Assembly: GCA_002269645.1 (NCBI GenBank)
Contig: NIVC01001315.1
Coordinates: 62,001-126,000, forward strand
Direction of reading: 5' to 3'
Length of the DNA: 64,000 nucleotides
DNA from: Macrostomum lignano
Taxonomy: Eukaryota
The notes below the pieces were generated by a model. It was not told the origin of the DNA. It saw only the letters and a program-made list of their open reading frames with translations, and ran no database searches. Made by a program: the position numbers and the translations under genes. Shown here piece by piece: positions 1 through 59,397 of this stretch (its first letter is position 1; each line of letters starts with the position of its first letter).

Positions 1-1902
1 AGAGCGGGACACGGCGTCTCTCTCCCTCCTACACGAGGAGAGGCCCCAGACTTGAAGAATCCCAGATCCCGCCGTTGCGACCCGTGGCGCGTAAAAGTAG
101 AGAATATTTCAAGGCAAGGAGGATGGGGAAGGGAGCTGAGAGCCATGCGGAACACGGGCTGGGCTGGGGCAGCCGGGGCTGCGAGGGAGAGAAGAGAGTC
201 GAGTTGAATCGCTGAGATGCGGCCGCTTGAATCAGATAATTGGCGGGCAGTCTATGCAGCCAGGCACTATCAAGAGTGCATCTCTGGGCCGGGGTTGCCA
301 CAGGGTCAAGGAGCAGCTCCGGTTCACCCGGCTGAAGCATTGTCAGCAAGTCCCGGAAGCTGCTAACTAATAGGCGGAACCAAGGCCAGGAACTGCTGCT
401 GCCTATGGCTTCTATGCTCACACTCTCCTACTGTGAGTAGAGATGCTTGCACTGCAAACTGCACGCAGTATAGAAAAATAGCAGAAAAAATGAAAGGAAA
501 GAATTGATACTGGCCAGTATGATTTTAGATTTTAAATCCAATTTAGTTTTCACAGCTCACCATGGATGCTGACGAGCTCCAAATCAGCAGCTGGCTGCTC
601 TTTGGCATTGGATTTCAGTTGCTGTGCACACGAGTGTATTAAGCATAAGTTTAAAGTTTAAAGATACAGTATTTAATTGATGATGACACTGTAATTCTCA
701 AAAAATTTACCATGCAAATGGCAATGATAATGTGAATGAAAGTATTCCAGTTCCCTGTAATTATATGAAGTTACAATGCCCAATGCTAATTGATAAAATA
801 TCAATTAGTAAGTACATTATAAATTTGAAATAAAAATTTATTAAATAAAAAAAGTAATTTTCAAAACCTATTTTTTTTGAAAGTGCAAAATAAATAAAAG
901 ATATGTAAAAAGGTAATTACTTGTGAGTATCAAATGCTTCAATAATTGTATAGCATAGCCCAACATGTGACTCTTCTATAATATTGGTTGTGAGTCACTA
1001 ATATGCCTGTATACAATAGTCTGGCCTATTTGAGTAACCTTTTATGTCATTAGCAACTCTTGCTAGCAACTTACTAGAGGTTGGGTGCACAAAATAGGCC
1101 AAGCTACCTACACAAAGCAGGATAGAATTTTTAAGATTTAAGGAAATCCCTTAGGTAATAATTTGCAAAAATTTTAATAAGAACCTTTGCATGGCTCTCA
1201 CAGTGAACTTTCTATTTACTACTAAAATATGCTCATATATTTGACTACTTGGATAATACTAACTGCTATAAAATAAATTTCAGTAGCTTCCTAAAGCCAA
1301 TAGCATTGAGCCAAGCACCATGGTTAATAAAAATAAAAGCCAACTTGTACTCTTTACTTAGAGCTTATAACTTTTACATTATAACAAAAACATTATTTTT
1401 GTTATGCTATATGACAAACATTTTCAGTGTATCCCTGACATAATAATCTTTCCTTTATTGGCAGTTTCATTTATATAATTTTGTATCTTAGATGTGCACA
1501 AGAGCTAAGTATGTAAGCAACTTTAGTCAGATGCTTGGCTTATATCTTTCTAGTGTATTACTAGGCATTTGGCATGAAATGCTAAATAAACTATTGGCCT
1601 ATTCTAGATTCCAACAGTCTTGAGTAGCTTTTTAGTTACCTTATATATATATTCATTCTAAATTCCTTAGCTAGCTACTGTTAAAAAGCTTAAAATAAAA
1701 CATTTTATATAGCTTGATTTTTTTACATATTGAACTTGACAAGTTTAAATAGTTTAAAGGATTTAGCATTGCAAGGTTACCAAATTTTCAGTTAATTTCT
1801 TTAAATTAACAGTTATTGATATTAGCTATTGCCAAAGTATGTAAATCCTATTACAAAAATCAATTAATATATAATATCTAGAATTTTTTTTAATGAGCTA
1901 CT

Positions 1903-2189
1903 TATTAGACTTTTTAATATATCGTAAGTGTTCATATAATATAATAATATTTATATTATGTAATAATAATATTTTTAGGGTAAACTCTATATTTTACTTT
2001 GCAATTGCACTATATACATAAAACTTTGCTTTAGCACTAATATGGTGCAATCTAACCCATTGACAAACAATCAGCTTTAGCTCTTGATGCTGTATGATTT
2101 CTTTTGCAGAAAGGTGACAGATTCCATTGCCAATATCTATATTACATTTGGCTTGTCTATCATCAAGACCTTTATAGTGTATGATAAGT

Positions 2190-2274
<85 letters not shown>

Positions 2275-3313
2275 GGTACTGCTCTCGCCGGCCATGCAAT
2301 AGCCAGAAAGGGGGGAGCAGTCAGAAAGCGCATCTCTGGGCCATTGCCCTCAGGAAGTCGCATCCCCCTGCTTGGTCTAGGGCGCCAGCGTCACTCATAA
2401 TAAGTAAGTACAAATACAAGTGCTTCAAAAATAGAGAACTGGGCCTTGAGGATAGACCTCATAGTGGGCACCCACCTAAACTCAATTATAATACCCTGGA
2501 AGTGCTCCTTGCAGAGAACAATCAGCAAACAATGGGCAAGTTGGCTGATATAAGCTAAATATGCACTAGATGACAATTGCTAATCACCTTTATCAGATGA
2601 AGATGAAAGCTAAACTTAGATGCAAGATGCCATATAAGCTTGGAGCCCATGATCTAGATAGCATTTATCTAGGTCATTACCTTAGTCAATCATACCAAAC
2701 TGATTGGCTGGATGATATGATCACTAGGGATGAGAACTAGTGCCTTAACCTCAATGTCCATTGCTGGCAATAATGATGTGGCCCTAGTAAAAAGCCAGAG
2801 TGAGAACTAAAATGTAAGCTTCATCCTAAGAAGTTCATACTGTCTGTCTTCTAGGATACCAAAGGAATCATGATGTAAGAGCTGTTGCCCAAGAACTAGA
2901 CAATCACTGCCAATTACTATCAGCATTAGCTAGACTATCTACAATAGGCTTTGACCAAGAAATGCTTGGAACATTGCAAAATAATCCTGCTATATGGGCA
3001 TGACAATATACTGGCATATAAGGCTTAGTCAATGCATAAGAAGCTGCTAGTGCTAGGTTAAGAGGTCTTCTTTAACCACCTTATAGCCCAGATCTTGCAT
3101 CTACGAGTACTAACTATTATCTTTTTGCTATGCTTAGCTAGTCAATGGCCCAATCAAGCTTCAAGGACAAGGAGGGCCTAAAGAAGCATCTGCATGACTT
3201 CTTTCACTCCAATAGCATAGAATAATATTATAAGAGCATCTATTCCCTGCATGCATGTTGGCAGGAGATTATTACCTTTGATATAAGAGAAACTTTTATA
3301 AATAATTCTAATA
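1903..3313 (+). mobile_element. Dead mariner (Tc1/mariner, DD34D-type) transposon, hypermutated; ends approximate
   Basis: Translation through stops gives mariner motifs: MLYDF..KVTDSIANIYITFG (2087-2150), FKNRELGLEDRPHSGHPPKL (about 2423-2480), ITRDEN* (=TGDExW, 2720), LHPKKF..SVF*D (2819-2857), HDN (2999-3007), LG*EV (3053-3067), PPYSPDLA (3076-3099). Putative right TIR ends ...ttctaata|ta at 3313; the left TIR (tattaga, about 1903) is weak. Confidence 0.9.
2194..2404 (-). mobile_element. 5'-truncated non-LTR retroelement/SINE 3' end with (TTG)n tail, inserted in the mariner ORF
   Basis: (CAA)n at 2191-2273 plus about 130 bp of GC-rich sequence, flanked by the direct duplication TAAGTACAA (2185-2193 and 2405-2413). 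Removing it restores the mariner frame VYDKYKYKCFKN. Confidence 0.7.
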
Positions 3314-4166
3314 TATTTCAATAATGTATTTAGACTACTTTTAAAATTTTTATATTTGGTTAAATAATTTATAATAATTTTATAGGCCTAATTAACAAAA
3401 ATTAATTATTATTATTATTGACAATGCTAATAAGACTAAAAATTCAATGAAAAAAAATATATATCCAACAAGATTTTGGATATATATATATGACATCATC
3501 ATAAACTATTTATTCTAATTTAACTAAATGCCCATTTAAAATTAATCCCTTTGATAGCTTTGCTTATATTAATGATCATATAAATACAATTTTTACTTAT
3601 ATATTTAAATGAATTAAATTATGAATTTTATTGCTTGTATATAATATGATTATCCTTTGATTTTTTAAATTTCTGCTACACTTCTTAAGTAGCCTACTTT
3701 AAAACAACCTTCTTTTTGTATTTAATCAATTATTTAGTTCTTAAGGCTTAAGTAAATAAATTATTTTTTTTTCTTTTATCTTATATTCATTGAGTAGTAC
3801 TCTATAAACATTTTTATATATTATTTGTTACTTAGCTAAAGAAAACAAAATATATTACATTTTGATTATAAGTCTATCTATTTTATACTGTTTTTAAATA
3901 TAAAATTCCTGTATTTTTGTATTAATAATAATAATAGATTAATACTTATAAATACCTGATTAATATCAATAATTAATAATTTTAGTCAACTTAAGATTAT
4001 TTTAACAATAAAAATAAGTTGTAAACAAAGATTTTTTTGTTTCAACATAATATTTACACTAACACATTTTATTTAATTTCGCCAATAATGTAAGTTGAAT
4101 TAAGATTTTCATTAATGATGCACTACACTATACTCTATAGTCTAGTTGCTCATTTTATTATAAATA

Positions 4167-7100
4167 GGGGTTCCAATGAGCTTCGTACAATGTGTCCCAA
4201 AAATGAAAAAACATACAAATGTGTGTTATGCAAATTGGATCAAAGAGGCACTAAATGATATAAATAAGTAAATCCAAAATATATGTCTGAAAGTATACAA
4301 AATATACTTTCCTATGAGTATTGAAACGATGTGTAATATGCCCTACAATAGAAGTTATAGGCACCAAAAGTTTAAGCAAAAAAACAAAAAAAAAACAGAA
4401 ATTTGTCCTTTATGAAAAATGGGGGTATGAAATACAAATTGAAATTTGAGCTTTTAAAAGAAAGAATATAACAAAATGGCTGTTGACTATACACAGAAAA
4501 TGATCTAAAAGATGAATTTTGGGGAAATCGGGATGAAATTTTTTCTAAATGCCCCTATACAGACAATGTAAAATTTTATTCTTTTTTTTCATTGCGTTAT
4601 TATGGGTGCGTTCGAGTGACTTAAAATGACTTAAACTGCCATTTTAACGTCCTTAGTAAAACAAATGTTAAGCAGACTAAATGTAAAAACAATCTAGGTA
4701 AATGATAGTCAAATTACAATTAAGAATTAATTCAATTTCTAAAACCGGTCTAAGATTAAAAAAACGTCGCCTATACTTCTTCCAACTCAACCTGAACGCC
4801 TAGGCACCGTTTTAACTTCGCTCGCAATTACCACATTTAATCGTAATTGAATATTTTGTATTCTTCACCTTTGTTCTATCATTTGCTTTCACGTCCTTTT
4901 GCTCAGTTCGCTACCTGGAAAAGCTGTTGGATTTCATAAATAGGGGCTTCAAATTACCAAAAGCAAAAAACCGCATCTCCTCAGCACCTTCTGCAAGGAA
5001 GATATAAATTTTCCATCAATACATATAAATTGTCATTGCCAAATGAAAAATCTGCCACAGTCAAAGGAATGATGCAGCTACAAGGATTTTATAGCTTTTT
5101 TGTATACATCATGCGATTCTAAATGACTGGAAGAGAGACACTTTCAAGGAAAGCTTTCCGCAAGGTCAAAAAAAAAATATTTTGTTGTGGTATATTTGTG
5201 TCTACTTATAGTAGACAAATGGAATTTAGCAACTACTAGCAATCTATGCCCCCCATTGGGGAGCCAAAGAAATTGATTTTTTTGATCTACAATTGATCTA
5301 CATGTAGCCTTGATATCTTAAAAAATCTGTCAAACTTCTTACCCTAACCCTAACCCCAACCCTAAATTTAATATTTTGTCCATGAGTTTTTGCATGGTGC
5401 TTCTATGATTTTTTGCATGACACTTCCATTATTTTTTTGCATGACGCTTCCATGATTTTTTCATCTGATGCTTCCATGAGCTAAGTTATAAGCTACCCTA
5501 ACCCTAGCCCTAACCCGAATCTTAACGCTATAACCCTGAACCTAACCCTAAACCTAAACTCTAATACCAACCCTAACACTAACCCTACAGCCTGACATCT
5601 GCATAAGTTTGTGATGCGCTAATAGTATTTTTAGCTTAGTATCTTAGCATTAAGGAGCCAAAAATGCAGTACAAGTTTTGTAATAAACTACATGTAGCAT
5701 CTCTTTGCAATATAGCTCAGTAGTCCCTTGTAAGCCTTGACATGTCAGCAATTCCCCCCACAAGCCTTAACATATCAATCCCCCCCCTTGACATCTCAGC
5801 AATGTCCCCATAAGCCTTGAAATCTAAAAAAATCTGTCAACTTTCTAACCCTAACCCTAGCCTAACCCTAACCCTAACCCTAACCCCAGCCCTAACCTTA
5901 AAGCATTGAAATTTCAGTAATTCTCTCCAAGAGTCATTATAGCACTACAGCATTATAGCAATTCCCTGCAAGCCTCGACATTGTAGGGATTCCCCAAATG
6001 AATCTCTTAACTTCGACATGAAGCTTATTTTATTTTTTATATTACGCTTTTCTATCAGCGATCCCTCCCCTGAGGAGGCATCAAATAATATAATAAAAAG
6101 TTTTCAATAAACTACATGTAGCTTCTGACTTTAGCCTTCACATCTCAGTTATTCCCCCATGAGCCTTGACATCTCAGCTATTTCCCCCGTAAGCCTTGAC
6201 ATGTCAGCGATGGCCCCCATAAACCTTGAAATCTGAAAAATCCCTTGTTAACCTTGAAACCCTCTAAAATCTAACCCTCAACCTACACCTGACCTAAACC
6301 TAACTTTAACCCAACCTAAAGCCTTGAATTCTCAGCAATTCTTCTCCCCTAAGCCTTGACATTTTAGTGATTCCTTCTTTAAGAATCACAGCACTATAAC
6401 GATTTCCACCAAGCTTTGACATTGTAGCAATTCCCAAATGAATCTTTTAACTTTGACATGACTTTTCTTTTATGTATACATAGTGCTACTTTTATTTTTT
6501 ACATGACTTCTTCTATCAGCGCCCCCCATGGCGAGCCAATAAAGAATGTAATAAAAAAATTGAGTAAAGTACATGTACTTTGAAATAGCTTCTGACTTTT
6601 GCTTTGACATCTCAGAAACCCTCCTCCCCCCTAATCTCATTTATTCTCCATGAGCCTTGACATCTCAGTAATTCTCTCCAGCACAGAACTATAGCTTCAT
6701 TTAATTTTCAATGTGAATTCTTCATTTATGTCGTATGGGGGTCAACAATGGAGGCTTCCGTTGGAAAGTCACTGGATTTTTTTGACCCTAGCATAAGATG
6801 ATCCCAACAAGCAACCCCTGGCATTTACCTGGTCAGCGACGCCAACTCTGTTTAATACATTGTTTAGTACATGTACAAGCAAAATACATTTCATTTTCAG
6901 AATCATTATTGAAGAAAAAATATTAACCAATAAAGAACATTTTAGGTGCTTGGACACACTACTTTAACTAGCTGAACAAGACAATATCATAAGCAGATTA
7001 AGAGAGGCTTGAAGAGATAATAAAGTATAAAAAGAAAGCAAAAAAATGACACCAAGCTTTTAGAAACTAGTCTAGGGAAAAAAAGAATGACAGGCAAAAG

Positions 7101-7328
7101 AATGCAAAAATTATATATTTTTTCGCAGAAAAGGTCACAAATTATAATACAAAAGTGCAATAGGAAATTGCGAAAAAAATATATAGTAAATATGGCATAA
7201 CTTTTTTTATTCCTTTGCCAAATCTAAAATGTGAGACCATTTTGGATTTTGGTCACAAAGATCTATCCAACATTCAACAATGTAAAAAACTATAAAAAAT
7301 AAAACTTCAAAAACCTCACTGGAACCCC
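4167..7328. mobile_element. Degenerate non-autonomous DNA transposon with TIRs and TA flanks, carrying internal telomere-like repeats
   Basis: TA|GGGGTTCCAATGAG (4165-4180) is inverted to CTCACTGGAACCCC|TA (7315-7330). Weaker inverted similarity lies further in. No ORF. Confidence 0.55.
5340..6320 (-). repeat. Interstitial degenerate (TTAGGG)n patches interleaved with an AAGCCTTGACATCTCAGCAATTCCC motif
   Basis: CCCTAA runs at about 5342-5365, 5498-5590, 5847-5900 and 6270-6320, e.g. aaccctaaccctagcctaaccctaaccctaaccctaacccc. Confidence 0.75.
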
Positions 7329-8224
7329 TATTAATTAAATATATACTAACCTAAGCAGCAAGCATTTATTATGTTTGCTGCTAGTAGAACTCTAATAGGC
7401 CTACTATAATATAACAAAAAAGTAAAGACAATATAATAAAGATAAAGATATAAACATTGTCATTGGTTGGGATAGAAAAGATAAGCACAATAATTTACTC
7501 AATTTGGAAGGCACAAATGATGCACACCTTTTCTCTATTATAAGTTGATTGATTTTTTCAATGAATTATATACTAATAAATTATCATACTCAAGCACATA
7601 TACTGTACACATGCATACATACATGCAAACATATATATATACACACTATAGTCTATCTATAGACCATAGCATATTGTCTATTGATATAATATACCCTAGG
7701 ATTTTGCAGCCCCTATTCAAAATTTTCTGGATTCACATTTGTGTTGTAAGTGTATGCAATGCCATTGTGTGGCAATGCTATAGGTCAACCTAAAAACTGT
7801 AAACTGTGAGTTATTAGGTAAACCTAATAACTCACTATGATAGTATTAACTATTTTATAGCTTGTAGGCCTAGGCCCTACACACAGACACAGTTAGATAA
7901 AAAGTAAGTCAATAACAGCAAAATACCAAAACATAGAGCTACTTCTGGAATTTTTAGAGAAGAGTAGCATAGATGATATTTAGTTCAGCTGGACAATTTC
8001 TTAGTTCTCAGACCTAGGACTATACTATAGATCTCAACGTTTTAACTCAATATAATAGGCCTAAGTTATTTAAGTTAAATTAACTACTAAAAGTACATTT
8101 TCTAAATTTAAAATAAAAATAACTTTTCTATTTGGTCTATACGACACCATTGCTGCTTTTTATAAAAAACTTTAGAATCTAACCTATAGATTTTAGTTTA
8201 TAACAGTTTTGGCGTAATATTTTA

Positions 8225-8618
8225 CGAAGAGCTTGCGTGCACGGCAGCCGTTCACGTAAGCTCAGAATTGCGTGCACGGCGGCTATCTACCTAGTGCTTT
8301 ATTTGCATGTATGCAGCCGTACACCTAGTGTTGTAATTGCGTGCACGGCAGCCGGCAATTGGCCGGGACTAGGGCCCTTAAATCCACGCATTGGCATTGG
8401 CAAACCTAATTAAAAAATATTTTTACTATATTGTTTTATAATGTTTTATCCCCCGTACACCATGGACTGCAAATGTAATCTTAATTCATTGTTTTTTTGT
8501 TAACTTGAATATTAATTCGAATAGTATATGACTTACTGTATAAGCCTATAAGATATAGCTCTGCCGTGCACGCAATTCTGAGCTTACGTGAACGGCGGCC
8601 GTGCACGCAAGCTCTTCG
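8225..8618. mobile_element. MITE with about 65-bp TIRs and 9-bp TSD (Mutator-like)
   Basis: CGAAGAGCTTGCGTGCACGGC...GCCGTGCACGCAAGCTCTTCG, with TSD AATATTTTA at 8216-8224 and 8619-8627. Confidence 0.9.
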
Positions 8619-9040
8619 AATATTTTAAGTGAAACTGTAACTTTGTTTAATTTTATTTAGTTTTAGTAGCCTACTTATAGTAGTTAGCGTTTTCGTTTTC
8701 GTTTTCGTTTTTATTTGGTAGTCGTGACCCTAGACTTACGGTACGTAACGTAGGTACCTTATTATCAGGGTTTTTTTTTGTGCGCAGAGTGTGCGTATGC
8801 ACCCTAAATTTTAAAATTGCACCCTGAAATTAAAAAAGTAGGTGCGGTTTAGGTGCGGTCTTATAACCATTTTTCTTTAAAGGCTTAACCATGCTTAAGC
8901 TATTTTTTATGCACTGCCTTAAAATATGAAACAAAATAACTCTTTAAATCCTATTAAGTCATATAGGCGATATAGCCTATAGCTATAGCCTTATGTAAGA
9001 TATTAAAATATACATTCCCAGTTGTCTGAAATGTGAGCAA

Positions 9041-11527
9041 TGTGAGGGTTTCACGAGAGATATTCAGACAAAGGCTCCCTAAAACACGCCCCACACCGGG
9101 CCCCGAACTGCTACACATTATAACATTTTTTGTCAATGCAGTATTTGATTTGATTGGAAAAGTTAAAATAGTAATGGAATAAATATCTTTATTTATTTTT
9201 TTAAATATTCTAATTTTTTATATTCTCGTTTTCATTATTAAATTATAATATTATTATTTTATTAATATTATTATTAATATCACTTATTGTTCACCGAATT
9301 TTATATTTCAAAGTAAAAAAAACTAAATTTAATAAAAACTTGAAGCTTAACAGAAAACGCATTCTGAAGTGTCTTTAGTTATAGTCCAATTTGTTTTAAT
9401 GTGTAGCGCTGCAGGGCGGTGCGGGGCGTGTTTTAGGGAGACCCATTCAGACAGACATTCAAAATGATTGTCTGTAACTTCAAACAAAATTGACCCGCTT
9501 CAACCATCTTTTTGGCAAATACTTACGCAAGTGTTGGGCGTCGAATAAGCTTTAATTTATTAACTGAAGTAAAAATCCTTCTGACATACATTGATTTAAA
9601 AATTGCTTAGCAACACTAGCTCTGATTAGAAATCGCTTTACTGTTGACTAAAATTGTTTTGATCGTAGCAGCCTAAAAGCAGATACTGGATTTAAAAATG
9701 CTTCAATTTACTCTATACGCATGTCTCAGCTTTAAAATGACACCTCAGGCGTCGCAAAAGACAGCTTTGATGCTGAGATATTCGACACTAAACATGCATT
9801 GCTTTGCGCAATCTCACATTCAGAAATTTCACTGATTTTTTGTCGATATTTGTGCAGTTGCCATGTCCTTGTTTTTCATCAGAATCTTGTCAAATTCTAG
9901 TCATGTCTATACGCATGTCTCAGCTTTAAAATGACACCTCAGGCATTGCAAAAGACAGCTTTGATGCTGAGATATTCGACACTAAACATTGCTTTGCTCA
10001 AACTCACATTCGGAAACTTCACTGATTTTTATTCAATATTTGTTCAGATGCTTGTCTACTTCTCCATTTATTAACCATCGCATGGAGCCTTGCTAACGTA
10101 CAAGTGTATGTAGTTACAGTAAATGGGGTTTTTGTGACTCACTTAAACTTGTTTACGCATTCTGCAGCTATTCGCCGCCTTTCATTAGAGTGATTCATGG
10201 AGTCCAGTTGATAAATTTCCACAAATTGGACTGCTTCTACGTCAGATCTCAACATTTGGAACTGTCCTTGAACTATTTCAGAGTTAAGTGAGCTAATGGC
10301 ATCAAATGGAAGGCTAGTGCTCGTACTTGGAAGCGAAGCAGGTTCACAATTGAAATGGTTGTATTCATGGCCATGGGATCTAAACTGATCTGTTTTACTT
10401 TCACGGTCGATTTGGTCTCAGAAGGAGCAGCAGTTGATGGACTGAGGTGAGAAGAAGATGTGTCACGATTTGAGCTGTTTTTAGAAAATATCTTTATCCA
10501 ATTAAATATTTTCATGCGGCTCCTTAGGTTGTTCCGAATTCCGAGTCTAGAAGTCAAGACAGAAAAAAAGTTAAGAACTGCTACTGTAGTCCGTAAGGAT
10601 TGGAAAGCTTAGCAGTACATTAGAAATCGCCTGTTCAATCTAAAAAGTTTGAAGTACATATAGCTATTGGGTTGCAACAACAGTAGAAAAAATTCTTCCT
10701 TTTTATTTTATTCCCACCGCTTACCTCATTCCGATTTGGATAGCAGAATTGCCACGCAAAAAAGTAAAAACATAACAATAAACTATTTGCTTCATATTAA
10801 TTGCCACTGACTGCTAATAAACGCGACGTCAATTTCTCTCAATAACAGTTGGAACATGTTTCTCGTACACTTGTATATTTATTTGAACCGCAAAGCAGTG
10901 AAAAAGTCATGATTGGTTGCCATATGTACAAATGTACACTCACAGACTCACTGACTCAGGTACAATCTATGCAATATAAAGGCAGGAATCATTAAAAATC
11001 AAATACTTAAGACAGTTTAAGAGAAGTCCAGGTTTAAACTGGACATGACTAGAATTTGACAAGTTTCTGATGAAAAACAAGGACACGGCAGCTGCACAAA
11101 TATCGACAAAAAATCAGTGAAATTTCTGAATGTGAGATTGCGCAAAGCAATGCATGTTTAGTGTCGAATATCTCAGCATCAAAGCTGTCTTTTGCGACGC
11201 CTGAGGTGTCATTTTAAAGCTGAGACATGCGTATAGAGTAAATTGAAGCATTTTTAAATCCAGTATCTGCTTTTAGGCTGCTACGATCAAAACAATTTTA
11301 GTCAACAGTAAAGCGATTTCTAATCAGAGCTAGTGTTGCTAAGCAATTTTTAAATCAATGTATGTCAGAAGGATTTTTACTTCAGTTAATAAATTAAAGC
11401 TTATTCGACGCCCAACACTTGCGTAAGTATTTGCCAAAAAGATGGTTGAAGTGGGTCAATTTTGTTTAAAGTTAAAGACGATCGTTTCGAATGTCTGTCT
11501 GAATATTTCTTGTGAAACCCTCACATT
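9041..11527. repeat. Long inverted repeat (foldback-like), arms 9041-9907 (interrupted) and 11041-11527
   Basis: 9445-9907 is the reverse complement of about 11041-11503 with few mismatches, and 9041-9070 pairs with about 11498-11527. A partial direct duplication of the arm follows at 9907-10040. Confidence 0.9.
9071..9444. mobile_element. MITE with 9-bp TSD nested in the left arm of the long inverted repeat
   Basis: TIR (AA)GGCTCCCTAAAACACGCCCC...GGGGCGTGTTTTAGGGAGACCC; TSD ATTCAGACA at 9062-9070 and 9445-9453. The right arm preserves the empty site. Confidence 0.9.
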
Positions 11528-11634
11528 CTAAACAAGACTCAAGAGAAATTGCACTCTGAGCCTTAAAATCGCACCTTGAAATTTGGCACAAGGTGCGATT
11601 TCGCACCTTATCTCTGGCGAAAAAAAAAACCCAG

Positions 11635-11716
11635 CTTATTATTAAGCGGAGGAAAAGAAACTAACAAGGATTCCCCTAGTAACGGCGAGTGAACGGGGAA
11701 GAGCCCAACACCGAAT
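11635..11716 (+). rRNA. Short 28S (LSU) rRNA 5'-region fragment, non-functional dispersed copy
   Basis: TTAAGCGGAGGAAAAGAAACTAACAAGGATTCCCCTAGTAACGGCGAGTGAACGGGGAAGAGCCCAACACCGAAT matches the conserved LSU segment at and after the ITS4 primer site. No other rDNA is nearby. Confidence 0.9.
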
Positions 11717-12964
11717 ACAATGATTTATTGTATGTCGATAGTCAATACTTACGTTGTATTTTTTTACACCTGAAACTTATTTTTGTCAATGGTTTTACGT
11801 TTGCGGTTTTTGAAAAAGTTTTGTTACGTCCACTTTAAAAATTCGGTATACAGAAGAGTATTCCTAGACACATCCCCCGATTTCCACCTAGTCGCTAGTG
11901 CTAGTAGTGGTAGGCCTAGTAGTATTAGTACTAGACTAGTAGGCCTTGGCAGATAGGCCTGCCTAGAAGAGAGCCAAGACAAGTTTTAACTTAAAGAATT
12001 TAATTTAAGGAACCAAATGCTGTGGCATAAGCATAACACACATTCAAAGCCTACTAGTAGAAGTGCCCAATACTAATGATAACTGGCATTAGGCTAGGCC
12101 TAATTCTAAACAAATATTTTATAAACGAAAGTAGTGGCTCTAGCTAGTAAGACTTTAAAGTTTTTATAATTATATTTTATTTAATTTGATAAATCCTATA
12201 TATTTGTCTAAATAAAAATACACATTATTGTGGTTGTGGAAATTAGTCAAGAGACTATACTCTTCCAATAAATCCTAAATATTAAATGCTAAATCTTAAG
12301 AAAACTACTGGCAATGGGCCAATGGTATTGCCATGCATTTTAAAATTAGGTCTGACCTAAACAAAATAAAAATAAGCTAAAAGAAAGAAATTAAAATTTA
12401 AAATAGAAGAAACTTATTTATTATAAAAAATTTATTAAATTATTTTTATATATGAATCATATAATTCAATATATAATTATTTAGTATAATATAGATAGGC
12501 CTATAATTATATATAGGCCCTATATAACATCTAGCTTATTTAGCCTTATTAACCTATTTTAAATAAATATAATGTTTTATTTAATATTTACTAGGTATTT
12601 ATACTTTATATACTATATTATAATCAGCCTATACAAAGATAGAAAGTTTACCTAGGTCTACCACTTTACCAGGTTTAGTTTGGCTAATAATTAGACATTT
12701 AGCTTGCATATAAAAGTATATATTTTCTAGAAAATTCATTATTTAAGTTATAATTCTAGCTCTAGGCCTATAATTATTTTCTTAATAATATTCACTTGTT
12801 ATTTTTTACAATAAAGATATTTGAAGTTGACAAACATTTATTAGTCCTAAAAGCTAGCTTATGTCATAAGATATTAGAATCTTGGTTATGCCATTAGCAT
12901 TTCTGCAATATCTATAATCTGTAAGCTGTCTTTGTAACCCCCCTCCCCTTTATAAGACTTAACA

Positions 12965-14370
12965 ATGACATTAGTAATTCCCCTATGAGCCATAGCAATG
13001 GCATCTTAGCAATTCCCCTGTATGCCATCCATAGTTATTCCCTTATAAGCCATGGCAATTGTTCTTATCAGTTCCCTATGAACCATGGCAATGGCAGCTT
13101 AGCAATTCCCTTATAAGCCATAGCAATTGTTGTTAGCAGTTCCCTATGAGCCATGGCAAAGGCATCTTAGCAATTCCCTCATGAGCCATAGCAATTGTTG
13201 TTAGCAGTTCCCCTATGAGCCATGGCAATGACATCTTAGCAATTCCCTCATGAGCTATGGTGATTCCCCTATAAGCCATGGCAATAGCTCTCAGCCATTT
13301 CCCTGCAAGCCATGACAATTTCCCCATGAGCCATAGCGATTCCCCTATGAGCCATGGCGATTCCCCTGTGAGCCAAGGCAATGGCAACTCAGAAACCTCT
13401 ATGAGCCATGGCAATTCCTCTATAAGCCATGGTGATTCCCTCATAAGCCATGGCAATGGTATCTTAGCAATTCCCTTGTGAGCCTTGACAATTCCCCTGT
13501 GAGCCATGGCAATTCCCCTGTGAGCCATGGCAATTCCCCTGTGAACCTTGACAATTACCCTGTGAGCCATGGCAATTCCCCTGTGAGCCATGGCAATTCC
13601 CCTGTGAGCCATGGCAATTCCCCTGTGAACCTTGACAATTACCCTGTGAGCCATGGCAATTCCCCTGTGAGCCTGGCAATTCCCCTGTGAGCCGTAGCAA
13701 TTCCCCTGTGAGCCTTGACAATTTCCCTGTGAGCCATGGCAATTCCCCTGTGAGCCTTGACAATTTCCCTGTGAGCCATGGCAATTCCCTGTGAGCCATG
13801 GCAATTCCCTGTGAGCCATGGCAATTCCCCTGTGAGCCTTGACAATTTCCCTGTGAGCCATGGCAATTCCCCTGTGAGCCATGGAAATGGCATCTCAGCA
13901 ATTCCCCTATGAGCCATGGCAATGGCTCTCAGCAATTCCCCTGTGAGCCATGGCAATTCCCCTGTGAGCCATGGAAATGGCATCTCAGCAATTCCCCTAT
14001 GAGCCATGGCAATGGCATCTCAGCAATTCCCTGTGAGCCATGGCAATTCCCCTTTGAGCCATGGAAATGGCATCTCAGCAATCCCCTGTGAGCCATGGCA
14101 GTTCCTCTGTGAGCCATGGCAATGGCATCTCAGCATTCAGCAATTCCCCTGTGAGCCATGGCGATTCCCCTGTGAGCCTTGACAATTTCCCTGTGAGCCA
14201 TGGCAATTCCCCTGTGAGCCTTGACAATTTCCCTGTGAGCCATGGCAATTTCCCTGTGAGCCATGGCAATTCCCCTGTGAGCCATGGCAATGACTCTTTA
14301 CAATTCCCCCATGAACCATGGCGATTCTTGTGTGAGCCATGGCAATGGCATCTCAGCAATTCCCCTGCAA
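12965..14370. repeat. About 21-22-bp minisatellite (CCCTGTGAGCCATGGCAATTC) with a leftward decay gradient
   Basis: Regular units at 13480-14370; increasingly TA-rich variants at 12965-13300. Confidence 0.95.
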
Positions 14371-24297: not shown

Positions 24298-27200
24298 TCA
24301 CGCCAACAGCCTGTCGATGGCCTCCTCCGCCAAGCGCTGCTGTCCATCGAACAGCGCCTCCGCCACGCGCTGATTTGTGGCGCCAACTTTGAGCGCCGCC
24401 AAAGCGGCCAGCAGGCGCGGCAGCCGGCCGAAGGCGCGCGGGTTGGCGGCGGCGGCCAGGCAGGCGAGGGCCTGATGCCGCAGCGACTGCAGCTTCACCC
24501 GCTGCTGGCTGAGCAGCGCCGGCTGCAGCAGCGCCAGGCTCTCCATCAGCGCCAGTTCGCCGGGCGCCGGCGCCAGCTCCAGCACCAGGCGCAGCGGACC
24601 GGCCAGGCCAGCCCGGCAGCACCGCTCCAGCAGCCCGGCAACCGAGGCGGCACCCAGGCGGTCAGTGGGGGCGGCGAGGCTCAGCGTCAGCAGCTGGCCC
24701 CAGCCGGCGCGCAGCAGGCAGCGCTTCTCATCCGGGAGCAGCGACTGGAACAGCTGGTTGCCGGCCTGCAGGCGGGCGACGGCGGCCTCCAGCAGGTCGC
24801 TGCCCGAGACGCCGCTTCGCCGGACTGGCGGCACCAGCGCCGGCTGCGGCGGCGGCAGAAGCGGCAGGAATGGCAGCGGCAGCAGAAACTGCTGATGCTG
24901 CTGATGCGGCTGCAGCTGCGGCAAAAACATCGGCGGCATCAGCGGCGGCGGCAGTGGCGGCGGCATCGGCAGCGGCACCGGGGGCGGGGTTGTCGCCCTT
25001 GCTGAGCTTCGGCTGCCGCCGCTGCCTCCGCAGGCCATCGATGAGGATTGGGAATTGTGGCACTGCTGACCGGCCGAGGACTGCCTGCCGGGGTCCCTGG
25101 AGCCCTTGTTCTTGCGGGCCCACGCTCCTCTTGCACGGCTGGAGACGGAGAGAGGACAAAGACTAGATGAGGGAATACAAAGACTAGATTGGGGAATACA
25201 AAGACTAGATTGGGGAATACAAAGACTAGATTGGGGAATACAAAGACTAGATTGGGGAATACAAAGACTAGATTGGGGAATACAAAGACTAGATTGGGGA
25301 ATACAAAGACTAGATTGGGGAATACAAAGACTAGATTGGGGAATACAAAGACTAGATTGGGGAATACAAAGACTAGATTGAGGAATACAAAGACTAGATT
25401 TGGGAATACAAAGATTAGATTGGGAATACAAAGACTAGAATGGGGAATACAAAGACTAGATTGGGGAATACAAAGACTAGATTGGGGAATACAAAGACTA
25501 GATTGGGGAATACAAAGACTATATTGAGGAATACAAAGACTAGATTGGGGAATACAAAGACTAGATTGGGGAATACAAAGACTAGATTGGGGAATACAAA
25601 GACTATATTGAGGAATAAAAAGACTAGATTGGGGAATGCAAAGACTAGATTGGGGAATGCAAAGACTAGATTGGGGAATACAAAGACTAGATTGGGGAAT
25701 ACAAAGACTATATTGAGGAATAAAAAGACTAGATTGGGGAATGCAAAGACTAGATTGGGGAATACAAAGACAGTTGTAGCTAAAACGAACACAGCGAAAG
25801 TCTTGCTTGCAGTGGAACTAGCAGATTGGTCTGGAATGAGTTGAGACCTCTGCCACTTTTAAGGCATCGGGTGACTATGTGACGGGCTTCGGCCATAGAC
25901 ATATTTGATTAGGGGAATATGGGGGAATACAGACAATTCTCCAAAGCGGAGATGTTTGAAATAAAAAATTGCCTACCATTTTTATTCATGCTGACGGCGA
26001 AGCATTTTTGCAGACGGCAGAAAGGACACCAGTTTCGGCGGGCTTTGTCGATCAGGCAGGTGCCCTTGCCGGCTGTGGGCAGAGTCGGGGAGTGGATGTT
26101 TGTGTCCGGGTTAGTGGCTCTGTCTGTGTCCGGGTTAGTGGCTCTGTCTGTGTCCGGGTTAGTGGCTCTGTCTGTGTCCGGGTTAGTGGCTCTGTCTGTG
26201 TCCGGGTTAGTGGCTCTGTCTGTGTCCGGGTTAGTGGCTCTGTCTGTGTCCGGGTTAGTGGCTCTGTCTGTGTCCGGGTTAGTGGCTCTGTCTGTGTCCG
26301 GGTTAGTGGCTCTGTCTGTGTCCGGGTTAGTGGCTCTGTCTGTGTCCGGGTTAGTGGCTCTGTCTGTGTCCGGGTTAGTGGCTCTGTCTGTGTCCGGGTT
26401 AGTGGCTCTGTCTGTGTCCGGGTTACTGTCTATGGTTATTTTTTTTAAAATCTGATTATGCAGTTTTCAACTACTCTTCAATACGTTCTAACACCTGGTA
26501 CATGTAGTTCTTCTTTGCCATTGTGGCCAGGAAATGATGCTCTGAAAAATGCTCTCTGCTCATCATTTTTCCGGAGATAAACAGAAATAAGGGATTCTCA
26601 TGAGAGAAGTGGCGGTACATCTAAACGTCTGAAACAGCCCATAAACCCAACCAAGGACCACTGTAGTAGAGTGGTCCTTGAACCCAACTACAGTAGGCTT
26701 TGCCGTCTGCACTACAGAGGTAACTCGAGCTACCATAGACAGAAATCCAGTTCCCACGCTTGCAAGCATTTTACGTGCCTTGCAGCAGCTGAGTCTAATA
26801 ATTGAATCAAACTTGATCCCCAACACCGCAGGCTGCCAGCCGTCAATCCCACCGTAAAGTCGCCATGACCGAAGCTTCGCCGTCCGCTCCTGCCCCTCCG
26901 GCACCTGCCGCAGCGGCTTCAGCCGCCACCTCGGAGTCCGACCTGGACTGGGTATACGTGAAGCTGGACCCTGATAACACCGGCTCTATCCCGGTGGACG
27001 AATTCTACCAGTTCATCACTCAGCACGAGCCGGCCAGGCAGTGTGTTGAGCACACCGCCCGCTACATCCTCGGCCTGTTCTGCCGCACCCAGCCAGGCCG
27101 CCTCACCCGGTCGGAGCTGGCGGCCTACATCAGCCTGTGCCGCAACGGCACCAGGGAGGATCAGTACGGCCTCATCTTCCAGGATGCTGGGCGGCGCTGG

Positions 27201-29794
27201 CCCGGCTGGCTGGCTAGAGACGAGCTGGTGCGCCTTATCGAGGACAAGTACCAGCAGGTGCTCAAGCCCGACTTTGAGGACATCTTCGACAACTGCGACG
27301 AGGACATGGACGGCCGGCTGACCCTGGCCGAGTTCATCAAGTTCATCGGCATCTACGAGCTCTGACGGGGCCGCGGCCCGGAGCTGTCGAACTTTGTTTG
27401 CTGACAAAACTGACATGCAGGCTTCTGCAGCGATATGTACGGTACATGAGACACTGTAGAAATGCTTTTTTCGTTTGCATTCGGCCTAGCAGAAATGCAG
27501 CATATTCCAAACTTTTGCTTCGTGCCTTGCTGTGATTTGCCCCTTATCGAAACACAGCTCATAGTCTCAGTCTGTCATCTCCTCTCCACTCAGTCACAGT
27601 CTGTCATCTCCGCTCCACTCAGTCACTCACAGTCTGTCATCTCCGCTCCACTCAGTCTCAGTCTGTCATCTCCTCTCCACTCAGTCACAGTCTGTCATCT
27701 CCGCTCCACTCAGTCTCAGTCTGTCATCTCCTCTCCACTCAGTCACAGTCTGTCATCTCCGCTCCACTCAGTCACTCACAGTCTGTCATCTCCTCTCCAC
27801 TCAGTCTCAGTCTGTCATCTCCTCTCCACTCAGTCACAGTCTGTCATCTCCGCTCCACTCAGTCACTCACAGTCTGTCATCTCCGCTCCACTCAGTCTCA
27901 GTCTGTCATCTCCTCTCCACTCAGTCACAGTCTGTCATCTCCTCTCCACTCAGTCACAGTCTGTCATCTCCTCTCCACTCAGTCTCAGTCTGTCATCTCC
28001 TCTCCACTCAGTCACAGTCTGTCATCTCCTCTCCACTCAGTCTCAGTCTGTCATCTCCGCTCCACTCAGTCTCAGTCTGTCATCTCCTCTCCACTCAGTC
28101 ACAGTCTGTCATCTCCTCTCCACTCAGTCTCAGTCTGTCATCTCCTCTCCACTCAGTCACAGTCTGTCATCTCCTCTCCACTCAGTCACAGTCTGTCATC
28201 TCCTCTCCACTCAGTCACAGTCTGTCATCTCCTCTCCACTCAGTCTCAGTCTGTCATCTCCGTTCCACTCAGTCACTCACAGTCTGTCATCTCCTCTCCA
28301 CTCAGTCACAGTCTGTCATCTCCTCTCCACTCAGTCTCAGTCTGTCATCTCCGTTCCACTCAGTCACTCACAGTCTGTCATCTCCTCTCCACTCAGTCTC
28401 AGTCTGTCATCTCCGTTCCACTCAGTCACTCACAGTCTGTCATCTCCGCTCCACTCAGTCACTCACAGTCTGTCATCTCCGTTCCACTCAGTCACAGTCT
28501 GTCATCTCCGCTCCGCTCAGTCACTCACAGATGCAGGTGTAGCTCATTCTCTTGCGAATCGACCGCTTGAAGAAGCAGGAGCAGCCGTCGCAGCAGAAGA
28601 CTCCGTAGTGCTTGCCGTAGCTCTTGTCGCCGCAGATGAGGCAGGGCACCGGCACCGGCAGGGTTCGGCCTGTGAAGGGCGATTTGGAAGGCCTGATTTA
28701 AATTTGACCAATTCGAGTGCAGCTGTGGTTTGAATGTCTGAGGAGGCTGGGTGGCCAAGCCTGAAGTCTGGGATTGTGGGGCTCAGCGCTGCCAATTAAG
28801 TCTGAAGTCTTGGGGAAGGAGGAAGGCGGGGCTCAGGGCTGCCAAGCCTGAAGTCTGCGGGGGGGGGCTCAGGGCTGCCAAGCCTGAAGTCTGCGGGGGG
28901 GCTCAGGGCTGCCAAGCCTGAAGTCTGCGGGGGAGGGGCTCAGGGCTGCCAAGCCTGAAGTCTGCGGGGGGCTCAGGGCTGCCAAGCCTGAAGTCTGGGG
29001 GGGGGGGGTTCAAGGCTGCCAAGCCTGAAGTCTGGGGGGGGGGGTTCAAGGCTGCCAAGCCTGAAGTCTGGGGGGGTTTCAAGGCTGCCAAGCCTGAAGT
29101 CTGGGGGGGGGGTTCAAGGCTGCCAAGCCTGAAGTCTGGGGGGGTTCAAGGCTGCCAAGCCTGAAGTCTGGGGGGGGTTCAAGGCTGCCAAGCCTGAAGT
29201 CTGGGGGGGGGTTTCAAGGCTGCCAAGCCTGAAGTCTGGGGGGGGGTTTCAAGGCTGCCAAGCCTGAAGTCTGGGGGGGGGTTCAAGGCTGCCAAGCCTG
29301 AAGTCTGGGGGGGGGGGTTTCAAGGCTGCCAAGCCTGAAGTCTGGGGGGGGGTTCAAGGCTGCCAAGCCTGAAGTCTGGGGGGGGTTCAAGGCTGCCAAG
29401 CCTGAAGTCTGGGGGGGGGGTTTCAAGGCTGCCAAGCCTGAAGTCTGGGGGGGGTTCAAGGCTGCCAAGCCTGAAGTCTGGGGGGGGGGGTTCAAGGCTG
29501 CCAAGCCTGAAGTCTGGGGGGGGGTTCAAGGCTGCCAAGCCTGAAGTCTGGGGGGGGTTTCAAGGCTGCCAAGCCTGAAGTCTGGGGGGGGTTCAAGGCT
29601 GCCAAGCCTGAAGTCTGGGGGGGGGGGGGTTTCAAGGCTGCCAAGCCTGAAGTCTGGGGGGGGTTTCAAGGCTGCCAAGCCTGAAGTCTGGGGGGGGGGT
29701 TCAAGGCTGCCAAGCCTGAAGTCTGGGGGGGGGGATGCGCAGTTCAGTGGGCGATCGCAACCAGATTAAATGATGCAGTCGGAGACTCACCCAT
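24298..29794 (-). CDS. Hr83: Nuclear receptor, NR2E group (Hr83/NR2E5-like); exons 29794-29791, 28669-28529, 26072-25977, 25138-24298; one-base frameshift near 25117
   Basis: M-G|[46 protein letters not shown]|[32 protein letters not shown]|AVQEERGP, followed by a divergent LBD ([29 protein letters not shown]). The CDGCSC P-box and DKARRNWCP are typical of Hr83. Exon sum is 1082 nt, one short of a multiple of 3. Confidence 0.9.
25145..25770. repeat. 21-bp minisatellite (GACTAGATTGGGGAATACAAA), receptor intron 3
   Basis: About 30 tandem units. Confidence 0.95.
26095..26425. repeat. 24-bp near-perfect minisatellite (TGTGTCCGGGTTAGTGGCTCTGTC), receptor intron 2
   Basis: About 13 units. Confidence 0.95.
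26865..27365 (+). CDS. Intronless EF-hand calcium-binding protein (NCS/calcineurin-B-like), nested antisense in receptor intron 2
   Basis: GCCATG start, 166 aa. Canonical loops [12 protein letters not shown] and [12 protein letters not shown]; NCS-like [24 protein letters not shown]; strongly GC3-rich codons. Confidence 0.9.
   Translation: MTEASPSAPAPPAPAAAASAATSESDLDWVYVKLDPDNTGSIPVDEFYQFITQHEPARQCVEHTARYILGLFCRTQPGRLTRSELAAYISLCRNGTREDQYGLIFQDAGRRWPGWLARDELVRLIEDKYQQVLKPDFEDIFDNCDEDMDGRLTLAEFIKFIGIYEL
27560..28528. repeat. About 29-33-bp minisatellite (CTCAGTCACAGTCTGTCATCTCCTCTCCA) abutting the receptor exon-2 donor
   Basis: About 30 tandem units. Confidence 0.95.
28810..29735. repeat. 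About 33-38-bp minisatellite (GGCTGCCAAGCCTGAAGTCT-Gn-TTCAA), receptor intron 1
   Basis: Tandem units with G runs of 7-14. Confidence 0.95.
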
Positions 29795-49700: not shown

Positions 49701-49704
49701 AGAC

Positions 49705-51750
49705 TTGATACAGTCACTGAGCACCTGATACAGTCACTCAGCACCTGATACAGTCACTGAGCACCTGATACAGTCACTGAGCACCTGATACAGTCACTGA
49801 GCACCTGATACAGTCACTCAGCACTCGATACAGTCACTGAGCACCTGATACAGTCACTCAGCACTCGATACAGTCACTGAGCACCTGATACAGTCACTCA
49901 GCACTCGATACAGTCACTCAGCACTTGATACAGTCACTCAGCACTTGATACAGTCACTCAGCACCTGATACAGTCACTCAGCACTCGATACAGTCACTGA
50001 GCACCTGATACAGTCACTCAGCACTCGATACAGTCACTCAGCACTTGATACAGTCACTCAGCACTTGATACAGTCACTCAGCACTCGATACAGTCACTCA
50101 GCACTTGATACAGTCACTCAGCACTTGATACAGTCACTCAGCACCTGATACAGTCACTAAGCACTTGATACAGTCACTCTACACTTGATACAGTCACTCA
50201 GCACTCGATACAGTCACTCAGCACTTGATACAGTCACTCAGCACTTGATACAGTCACTCAGCACTCGATACAGTCACTCAGCACTTGATACAGTCACTCA
50301 GCACTTGATACAGTCACTCAGCACCTGATACAGTCACTAAGCACTTGATACAGTCACTCTACACTTGATACAGTCACTCAGCACTTGATACAGTCACTGA
50401 GCGCCTGATACAGTCACTCAGCACCTGATACAGTCACTGAGCACCTGATACAGTCACTGAGCACCTGATACAGTCACTCAGCACCTGATACAGTCACTGA
50501 GCACCTGATACAGTCACTCAGCACTCGATACAGTCACTGAGCACCTGATACAGTCACTCAGCACTCGATACAGTCACTGAGCACCTGATACAGTCACTCA
50601 GCACTCGATACAGTCACTCAGCACTTGATACAGTCACTCAGCACCTGATACAGTCACTCAGCACTCGATACAGTCACTCAGCACCTGATACAGTCACTCA
50701 GCACTCGATACAGTCACTCAGCACTTGATACAGTCACTCAGCACTTGATACAGTCACTCAGCACTCGATACAGTCACTCAGCACTTGATACAGTCACTCA
50801 GCACTTGATACAGTCACTCAGCACCTGATACAGTCACTAAGCACTTGATACAGTCACTCTACACTTGATACAGTCACTCAGCACTTGATACAGTCACTCT
50901 ACACTTGATACAGTCACTCAGCACTTGATACAGTCACTCAGCACTTGATACAGTCACTCAGCACTTGATACAGTCACTCAGCACTCGATACAGTCACTCA
51001 GCACTTGATACAGTCGCTCAGCACTTGATACAGTCACTCAGCACTTGATACAGTCACTCAGCACTTGATACAGTCACTCAGCACTTGATGCCGTCACTCT
51101 GCACTTGATACAGTCACTCAGCACTTGATACAGTCACTCTACACTTGATACAGTCACTGAGCACCTGATACAGTCACTCAGCACTTGATACAGTCACTCA
51201 GCACTTGATACAGTCACTCAGCACTTGATACAGTCACTCAGCACTTGATACAGTCACTCAGCACTTGATACAGTCACTCAGCACCTGATACAGTCACTCA
51301 GCACTTGATACAGTCACTCAGCACTTGATACAGTCACTCAGCACTTGATACAGTCACTCTACACTTGATACAGTCACTCTGCACTTGATGCAGTCACTCA
51401 GCACTTGATGCAGTCACTCAGCACTTGATCCAGTCACTCAGCACCTGATACAGTCACTCTGCACTTGATACAGTCACTCAGCACTTGATACAGTCACTCA
51501 GCACTCAATGCAGTCACTCAGCACTTGATACAGTCACTCAGCACTCGATGCAGTCACTCAGCACTTGATACAGTCACTCTGCACTTGATACAGTCACACA
51601 GCACTCGATGCAGTCACTCAGCACTCAATGCAGTCACTCAGCACTTGATACAGTCACTCAGCACTCGATGCAGTCACTCAGCACTCGATGCAGTCACTCA
51701 GCACTCGATGCAGTCACTCAGCACTCGATGCAGTCACTCAGCACTCGATA
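49705..51750. repeat. 20-bp satellite (GATACAGTCACTCAGCACTT), about 100 units
   Basis: Long tandem array with variant blocks that recur. Confidence 0.98.
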
Positions 51751-52079
51751 CAATCCAGTCACTCAACTCTTGGAAGCCCAACAAGCGCACAACACTTCGC
51801 GGGAGCCTTGGCCCAAGTTTATAAAACGCGGGACATATCATTCAAAACAATTTTCGTCGTCAAAATGGCTCTTGTAGTGACTTGTAGTTGATGCCTTATC
51901 AATAGATAAGTTTCTGCAGCGAATGCTCTGCGCAAAACCCCCGGACCCTTTTTTCTTCTGAGTTGACAAGTTTGCAACTTTTTATATAAACAAATTTAGG
52001 GCCAGGTATGTTGTGTACATGTAACCTGCTCTGTGCAAAGCATGTACTTGGCGCCAGAGTTCACTGAAACTGTGGCGCC

Positions 52080-59190: not shown

Positions 59191-59397
59191 CATTTTGTGC
59201 TTCATAAGTAATAAATTTATCAAGGCTGAACGGCCACTTGCGATTAAAGCTGATTGTTGCAATTTATTAGAGCATGTGTACAATGGAAAAGCATGCACGG
59301 AATCAAAGCAGATCATCCGAAAATTCGATGAGGACACGAGTAAAACAAACTAATTCAGCGAAAGAGAGATTGGCAGCAGCACAATTTTCAGGAGTCT

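Follow-up and report, generated by a model that had tools for sequence, protein, structure and literature searches.

We found that the relic of a mariner transposon in the genome of Macrostomum lignano, a flatworm that is free-living, has decayed almost exclusively by C>T change on both strands, with CpG, not CpA, as the prime target. The relic lies near the left end of a 64,000-nucleotide stretch (the window; assembly GCA_002269645.1, contig NIVC01001315.1, positions 62,001 to 126,000 of the forward strand), within a ~3.6-kb CpG-free, AT-rich zone of a 13-kb AT-rich island. The initial annotation of this locus had described CpA>TpA hypermutation resembling fungal repeat-induced point mutation (RIP), and had suggested a repeat-targeted, cytosine-mutating defence in this lineage. 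The parts of this claim that stood up were the two-strand C>T change reaching beyond CpG and the preference for CpA over CpC; CpA as the main target did not stand, and repeat targeting found no support. We give an even chance to another account, in which a methylated AT-rich island would have decayed by deamination of 5-methylcytosine at CpG (5mCpG) together with an AT-biased C>T change at other cytosines.

Identity and structure of the mariner relic

The stop-masked translation of the relic matched Pfam Transposase_1 (PF01359) with E=2.6e-12, and residues 13-339 of the Mos1 transposase aligned to it with E=4e-27, in agreement with the mariner identity given by the initial annotation. Judged by these alignments, 2042-3313 is a near full-length, genuine mariner relic. 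The same translation had no match among 5.8 billion proteins, and a 50-residue stop-free piece (2406-2555) retrieved two distant matches only from 1.8 billion representatives. A profile built from the relic, Mos1, and SETMAR recovered only Mos1-like (mauritiana) mariners at ~100-120 bits, none of them close; it was rejected, and tallies made against that panel were superseded because subfamily divergence dominated them. The closest family was retrieved by a query used for searching only, in which the panel residue was restored wherever a reversal of C>T or G>A leads to it. The relatives found in this way, P0123 and P0124, are intact DD34D transposases of 340-343 residues from short environmental contigs and carry HTH_48 and Transposase_1 domains. 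Among 5.8 billion proteins, the de-mutated query found neither an M. lignano copy nor an intact copy of the family, the best match being 47% identical. P0123, the nearest relative, scored 228 bits against the real relic DNA and was 40% identical to it over 319 codons, stops included; the frameshift-aware alignment began at 2057 or 2084. The relic and its open reading frame (ORF) comprise the following parts, where HTH stands for helix-turn-helix:

2042 (ATG) to ~3313, plus strand: relic ORF (Pfam, Mos1, and relatives alignment)
2042-2194, plus strand: 5' part of the ORF, N-terminal HTH region (MVQSNPLT... against MNQPYPLT... in P0123)
2195-2412, minus strand as judged from its tail: younger non-mariner insertion, 218 bp (direct reading; TRF)
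2413-3313, plus strand: rest of the ORF, covering the HTH_48-like region and the DDE catalytic domain; frameshifted near 2550 and 3068
2720-3067, plus strand: densest stop-bearing frame, 116 codons with 11 stops
2729-2731, plus strand: first catalytic Asp, kept as GAT in ITRDEN* (from ITGDEKW; alignment to Mos1 and relatives)
3002-3004, plus strand: second catalytic Asp, kept as GAC in HDN
3112-3114, plus strand: third catalytic Asp, now Asn (AAC, a G>A transition)

The relic shares with P0123, P0124, and Mos1 the order of HTH, HTH_48, and DDE regions, the motifs ITGDEKW, HDNARPH, and PYSPDLAP, and the first two catalytic aspartates. It differs from them by 15 stops, two frameshifts, the replacement of the third aspartate by asparagine, the 218-bp insertion, and the lack of recognizable terminal inverted repeats (TIRs). 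We assigned the family to DD34D because the second and third aspartates are 34 residues apart in intact P0123; the corresponding distance in the relic is 35 codons, following two inserted codons, one deleted codon, and one frameshift. The indels of the relic comprise the 218-bp insertion, its two frameshifts, and two in-frame two-codon insertions. Thus, the initial description of the element as free of indels applies to 2720-3067 but not to the whole relic. No convincing TIRs were found bracketing the ORF (the best candidates were 70-80% and AT-only), and the ends are probably mutated beyond recognition. A second copy of the relic was not found in the window.

The insertion at 2195-2412 is made up of a perfect (CAA)28 tract at 2190-2274 (100% matches in TRF), corresponding to a minus-strand (TTG)n tail, and ~136 bp of 57% GC. 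It contains six CpGs (observed/expected 0.56), the only CpG cluster inside 450-4100. Because it is bounded by the duplicated AAGTAC / ATAAGTAC, the insertion resembles a short retroposon. No further copy of it was found in the window, and the tRNA scan gave no match, so that it is not tRNA-derived; the Rfam scan was also negative.

Substitution spectrum and sequence context

The initial annotation had rested on 2720-3067, which is the densest, frameshift-free stretch of the relic. Translation confirmed the 11 stops listed there, at 2738 (TAG), 2771 (TAA), 2774 (TGA), 2801 (TGA), 2852 (TAG), 2876 (TAA), 2897 (TAG), 2927 (TAG), 2945 (TAG), 3026 (TAG), and 3059 (TAA), nine of them being TAG or TAA and two TGA. 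The closest relatives carry tryptophan at 2738, 2774, 2852, and 3059 and probably also at 2876, glutamine at 2771, 2927, and 2945, and arginine at 2801 and 3026; position 2897, where relatives have threonine, is ambiguous. The stops therefore do sit at tryptophan, glutamine, and arginine codons, as had been claimed. However, CAA, CAG, TGG, and CGA are the only codons that a single transition turns into a stop, always by C>T or G>A; of the five possible routes, three are CpA>TpA or TpG>TpA by definition. As the genetic code forces stops onto tryptophan, glutamine, and CGA-arginine codons whenever transitions dominate, their placement carries little information on RIP. The stitched frame 2084-3282 holds 15 stops in 325 codons, including the 11 of the dense stretch. 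For a random sequence of the same composition, 7.7 stops are expected in 116 codons; 7 and 10 were counted in the remaining frames. Thus, the stop density is near random, and the unusual point is that homology survives beside it.

A profile of the 40 nearest relatives was next used for a frameshift-tolerant alignment of the relic, and scoring was limited to codon positions at which a conserved residue dictates the base, such as C1 and A2 of histidine or T1, G2, and G3 of tryptophan. The main table covers columns at least 60% conserved; the comparison of CpA with CpC was also made at 80%. CpA-type sites were H1, Q1, W2, C2, and M3, and CpC-type sites were P1, G2, and W3. Transitions had occurred at 59 of 166 fixed G/C bases (G:C>A:T) as compared to 5 of 161 A/T bases. 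By class, the changes were as follows:

A/T sites: n=161; transitions 3%; transversions 9%
Arg CGN codons (CpG): 11 codons; CpG lost in 11 of 11, 10 by transition; transversion in 1 codon
CpA-type sites: n=24; transitions 58% (14/24); transversions 12%
CpC-type sites: n=38; transitions 24% (9/38); transversions 13%
Other G/C sites: n=80; transitions 29% (23/80); transversions 15%

Given as ranges, transitions came to 58-67% at CpA-type, 14-24% at CpC-type, and 1-3% at A/T sites. The former Arg CGN codons now read TGY, CAY, CAR, or TAY, with one CTG. When sites were sorted by their present-day neighbor, none of 8-10 cytosines before T had undergone a transition, as compared to four of five before G (80-100%). 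CpA-type sites were changed more often than CpC-type sites (Fisher p=0.008; p=0.0015 at 80% conservation). Both strands were hit, with C>T at 22 of 74 sites and G>A at 37 of 92, and the initial annotation was right in assigning the missense changes to C>T and G>A on both strands. The order of C>T and G>A along the element was random (28 runs against 28.6 expected, z=-0.17), as expected for many independent deaminations.

P0123 served as a control, scored against a panel from which it had been excluded. Its values were 8% and 7% at A/T sites, its transitions at G/C sites amounted to 3-9%, and its transversions (7-20%) were not exceeded by those of the relic (9-15%). A second control, P0124, gave 0-3% throughout. 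The relic exceeded the control at CpG (Fisher p=2e-5), CpA-type (3e-5), CpC-type (0.007), and other G/C sites (0.002), without any excess of A/T transitions or transversions. Thus, the relic-specific excess consists of G:C>A:T transitions only. At non-CpG G/C sites, transitions (24-58%) were more than tenfold those at A/T sites and about threefold the transversions; roughly 30% of the G:C pairs of the relic have changed. Transitions confined to CpG, which the initial annotation had named as speaking against its reading, were therefore not what we found.

The near-extinction of CpG had gone unnoticed in the initial annotation. The relic retains 1 CpG in ~1050 bp, an observed/expected ratio of 0.03. 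The corresponding ratios are 1.36 for TpG, 1.13 for CpA, 1.01 for TpA, 0.73 for ApC, 0.54 for GpT, 1.62 for GpC, 0.87 for TpC, and 1.07 for CpC. Intact relatives have 50-54% GC, with CpG at 0.8-1.07, TpA at 0.5-0.7, and GpC at 1.1-1.2. Both the CpG depletion and the reciprocal gain of TpG and CpA that 5mCpG decay predicts were thus present. CpA, proposed earlier as the dominant target, is outdone by CpG, which was lost from every scored CGN codon.

The dinucleotide indices that the initial annotation had proposed as a check did not return RIP values: the relic had TpA/ApT of 0.89-0.94, (CpA+TpG)/(ApC+GpT) of 1.7-1.9, and a composite index of -0.8 to -0.9. The thresholds used for fungal RIP are TpA/ApT >=0.89, (CpA+TpG)/(ApC+GpT) <=1.03, and a composite index >0. 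We do not use these values as a clean refutation of RIP, since they are confounded: some 60-70 decayed CpGs add back to the CpA and TpG counts, and a general C>T change drains the ApC and GpT of the denominator. The sole segment of the window that passes the classical indices is 8001-9000 (TpA/ApT 1.48, substrate index 0.81, composite +0.68); it is not depleted of CpG (observed/expected 1.28).

Forward simulations were started from the ORFs of the relatives. CpG decay alone produced too little change, with 1-2 stops per 116 codons and TpA at ~0.5. Neurospora-like targeting of CpA ended far from the relic, with CpG at 1.4-1.8 and CpA/TpG at ~0.3. CpG decay combined with a general C>T pressure matched the CpA, TpG, TpA, and TpA/ApT of the relic. 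To obtain the excess of GpC and the deficit of ApC/GpT as well, a neighbor effect is needed by which C after G is spared and C after A is favored. In both the relic and the flank to its left, the trinucleotides GCA, GCC, and GCT reach 2.0-2.6x expectation; ACN is lowest in the relic. Protection by a 5' G was clear in the surviving k-mers but not at the inferred mutated sites (21% versus 32-37%). We know of no mutational process that accounts for this effect. Arithmetic from the present CpA and TpG counts puts the true loss of CpA at 35-55%. Elsewhere in the window, 12000-13100 has GpC at 1.9-2.6 times expectation.

Extent of the decay and the repeats of the window

The GC content of the window is strongly bimodal: islands of 17-40% GC lie between DNA of 50-65% GC that is packed with minisatellites. 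The features that bear on the extent of the decay are listed below.

~450-13,000: AT-rich island (composition scan)
32,300-34,000: AT-rich island (composition scan)
63,000 onward: AT-rich island (composition scan)
450-4100, no strand: CpG-free, AT-rich, high-GpC zone (400-bp composition scan; di- and trinucleotide tables)
9445-9907 and 11042-11504: arms of a young inverted repeat, 463 nt each, 98% complementary, 1134 nt apart
9712-9795 and 9906-9989: 84-nt direct repeat inside the inverted repeat

The CpG-free zone reaches beyond the relic ORF by 1.6 kb on the left and 0.8 kb on the right. Its flanks have 17-30% GC, essentially no CpG, and GpC at 1.8-2.5 times expectation, and a six-frame Pfam scan of the left flank found no protein domain. 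The rates measured in the relic imply, by arithmetic, an equilibrium GC of ~15%, near the 17-24% of the flanks, which thus have the appearance of older DNA subject to the same regime.

The GC-rich repeats of the window tell a different story. Thirteen GC-rich tandem arrays, with up to 102 copies at 90-99% identity, were compared with the array consensus: 47 G:C>A:T and 45 A:T>G:C transitions were counted, with no CpG or CpA excess among the variants. This balance points to mosaic, island-specific methylation. The inverted repeat, probably a young foldback or long-TIR element spanning 9445-11504, lies 6 kb from the relic and has normal CpG content. Its arms differ at nine positions and the direct repeat at two. 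Seven of these 11 differences exchange CpG with TpG or CpA, two are transversions, and the remaining two are CpA/TpA and CpT/TpT. This is the signature of methylated CpG, at ~30x the non-CpG rate. RIP in Neurospora acts on repeats above ~400 bp and ~80% identity (PMC3318451), and the 463-nt, 98% identical inverted repeat exceeds both thresholds. Together, the tandem arrays and the inverted repeat argue against an active homology-triggered process.

Other repeats of the window were also recorded. The AT-rich island contains interstitial, telomere-like (CCCTAA)n arrays at 5340-5368, 5495-5597, and 5846-5900, which alternate with 30-bp units (AGCCTTGACATCTCAGC.ATTTCCCCC); judged by eye, these units are similar to the minisatellite at 13.0-14.3 kb. 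These arrays (5.3-5.9 kb) were considered as an internal clock and rejected: by eye, their substitutions are mixed and not dominated by C>T, and they lie outside the CpG-free zone. The 21/42-bp minisatellite at 13000-14300 (unit GCAATTCCCCTGTGAGCCATG) has 50% GC and is CpG-free (0.04-0.08 times expectation); no CpG is present in its repeat unit. The minisatellite load of 14000-63000 is very high, with more than 40 TRF rows, some overlapping, and periods that span 12-180 bp; among them are 49703-51752 (20 bp x 102) and 57834-59193 (16 bp x 85, 99% identical). Many of these minisatellites yield spurious long ORFs. A long simple-repeat tract lies at ~53.9-55.0 kb.

The GC-rich parts of the window encode animal genes, including SPRY/SOCS box, scramblase, CAP, and weak C-type lectin matches. 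The window also holds the following gene:

26865-27365: EF-hand gene, 166 residues (exact match on contig NIVC01001315.1 only)

The called genes closest to the relic are more than 10 kb away. A fragment of a BEL/Pao retrotransposon protease (Peptidase_A17, E=1e-22) at 47358-47849 has 53% GC and near-normal CpG, so that at least one transposon of the window escaped the AT shift. These genes and the BEL/Pao fragment bear out the animal host assumed by the initial annotation.

Explanations for the decay and their implications

The account we favor would run as follows. The island that holds the extinct DD34D mariner would be, or have been, a DNA-methylated, silenced domain of the germ line. After the death of the element, near-exclusive C>T change would have struck both strands in independent, interleaved events, with deamination of 5-methylcytosine removing essentially every CpG. 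A weaker C>T pressure would have acted on the other cytosines in the order CpA > CpC > CpT, sparing C after G and moving the sequence from ~50% GC toward the 17-25% of the older flanks. This pressure may stem from non-CpG methylation of the DNMT3 type or from poor repair of deaminated cytosine in this chromatin. The account is the simplest one and covers the extinction of CpG, the extent of the zone, the interleaving of strands, the spectrum of the young duplicates, and the untouched GC-rich repeats. In contrast to planarians and parasitic flatworms, M. lignano has kept DNMT1 together with DNMT3, and its 5mC is at a low level (PMC11292947, PMC9246332, PMC10658182). The DNA methyltransferases reported for it in the literature are DNMT1, DNMT3, and DNMT2 only (PMC11292947, PMC3710501).

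Several points weigh against this account. The excess is not confined to CpG, as non-CpG G/C sites are changed at 24-58% in the relic against 3-9% in the control. Non-CpG methylation or weak repair is an added assumption, because CpG-only methylation, the form found in other animals, leaves 25-60% C>T at non-CpG sites against 1-3% T>C to be explained. Parts of the same island, 4400-5200 and 8000-12,000, have normal CpG content, so that the regime is patchy and not uniformly regional. Methylation patterns have been described as unknown in free-living flatworms, including the M. lignano genome (PMC9246332). Each context is represented by few sites (18-38). The magnitude of the excess is uncertain, as the panel consists of relatives at most 40% identical and not of the family's own consensus; for lack of such a consensus, ordinary decay is also not cleanly separable from lineage divergence. 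The 9-15% transversions could accordingly mean true hypermutation if the element is young, or a strong AT-biased drift if it is old. The non-CpG component itself is real, with a more than ten-fold asymmetry over T>C. Candidate mechanisms are DNMT3-type non-CpG methylation, weak uracil repair, and an ancient burst of RIP-like or deaminase activity. Mammalian non-CG methylation prefers CpA, often with A at -1.

The least unlikely of the alternatives is the ordinary neutral decay of a very old element, in which loss of methylated CpG and an AT-biased spectrum would combine with amino acid differences misattributed to mutation. If the transversions all represent decay, the age of the element suffices for the loss of every methylated CpG. 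The young duplicates rank CpG far above other C>T, which equals or exceeds transversions, with A/T transitions last, approximately the order seen in the relic; the stops at tryptophan and glutamine are forced by the code, and the relic does have indels. Such decay is hard to reconcile with non-CpG transitions more than tenfold those at A/T sites and about threefold the transversions, with the 1:1 ratio in the GC-rich arrays, with the significant difference between CpA-type and CpC-type sites, and with a GpC excess (1.62; 2.2 in the flank) that requires a neighbor effect. Animal 5mCpG decay of transposable elements, whether vertebrate or of the mosaic invertebrate kind, resembles the relic in its near-extinct CpG, its TpG and CpA excess, the presence of DNMT1 and DNMT3, and the predominance of CpG transitions between young duplicates of the same island. 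The relic departs from it by the large non-CpG C>T excess, the near lack of A/T>G/C transitions, and the 5' G protection. Also unlikely, in our view, is that M. lignano or a recent ancestor directed a cytosine-mutating defence at silenced transposon islands through a DNMT3-type enzyme or a dedicated deaminase; a DNMT3-type enzyme would then act by methylating CpG and CpA or by deaminating cytosine directly, driving C>T far above background.

A homology-dependent, RIP-like conversion of C to T by a DNMT-like enzyme or a deaminase, which would have killed the mariner family and made the AT-rich islands, appears improbable. It would suit the near-pure G:C>A:T decay on both strands at ~30% of G:C pairs (other changes being few by comparison with the intact relative), the preference for CpA-type over CpC-type sites, and the bimodal GC with AT-rich islands amid 50-60% GC DNA. 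The lack of an intact family copy among the 5.8 billion proteins is consistent with an extinct family, and CpG-directed RIP-like hypermutation exists in some fungi (PMC3318451). RIP of Neurospora crassa and other Ascomycota, which depends on a RID/Masc1-type DNMT and takes place before meiosis, shares with the relic dense, near-exclusive G:C>A:T change on both strands, many stops in a transposase, a victim in an AT-rich island of a GC-richer genome, and CpA over CpC among non-CpG sites. In contrast, the relic has CpG as its strongest target, undepleted CpA/TpG, negative indices, no strand patches, and an animal host, and Neurospora-type simulation did not fit it. The near-identical long repeats nearby were spared: the tandem arrays are balanced, and the inverted repeat differs mostly at CpG despite passing the RIP thresholds. 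The left flank has the same signature without a recognizable transposon domain. The recent polyploidy of M. lignano and its repeat fraction of ~75% are also hard to square with active RIP. The CpG-directed hypermutation (TpCpG) of Pucciniomycotina (Horns et al. 2012, PMC3318451) is likewise a CpG-centered C>T change on transposon-like sequence for which methylation and a RIP-like cause were not told apart, as here. The relic differs in lacking an evident 5'-T requirement, in its strongly hit non-CpG sites, and in being one locus and not a set of family alignments.

Editing of the transposon DNA by an AID/APOBEC-like cytidine deaminase seems very improbable. The C>T-only spectrum would fit, and a 5'-A/T preference is known from some deaminases; the surviving cytosines are in line with it, being scarce after A and T and overrepresented after G (ApC 0.73, TpC 0.87, CpC 1.07, GpC 1.62). 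As in APOBEC3 editing of retroelements, C>T (G>A) hypermutation has inactivated a mobile element; that editing, however, is strand-specific, clustered, and made on single-stranded cDNA, whereas the changes here are even on both strands, randomly interleaved without strand-coordinated clusters (28 runs against 28.6), and spread over a DNA transposon and its non-mariner flanks. A CpG preference is foreign to deaminases, and a cut-and-paste transposon has no obligatory single-stranded intermediate. We attach next to no weight to an artefact, in which a fungal or foreign contig would have been misassembled into the assembly. The bimodal GC does recall RIP-affected fungal genomes, but GC-rich DNA flanks the AT-rich island on both sides within one 262-kb contig, several such islands are spread along that contig, the flanking DNA holds animal genes and a BEL/Pao element, and the composition is unlike that left by Neurospora-type RIP.

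A single locus is no demonstration of a RIP defence like that of fungi. It does provide sequence-level evidence that M. lignano has sharply bounded, CpG-erased islands beside uneroded GC-rich repeats, which would imply a mosaic, transposon-directed methylation of the germ line. The non-CpG C>T excess is unexpected from animal methylation as now understood. If it proves general, it would point to substantial non-CpG methylation or to an active cytosine-mutating process in an animal, and a defence of the kind considered above would, if true, be a functional analogue of fungal RIP in an animal.

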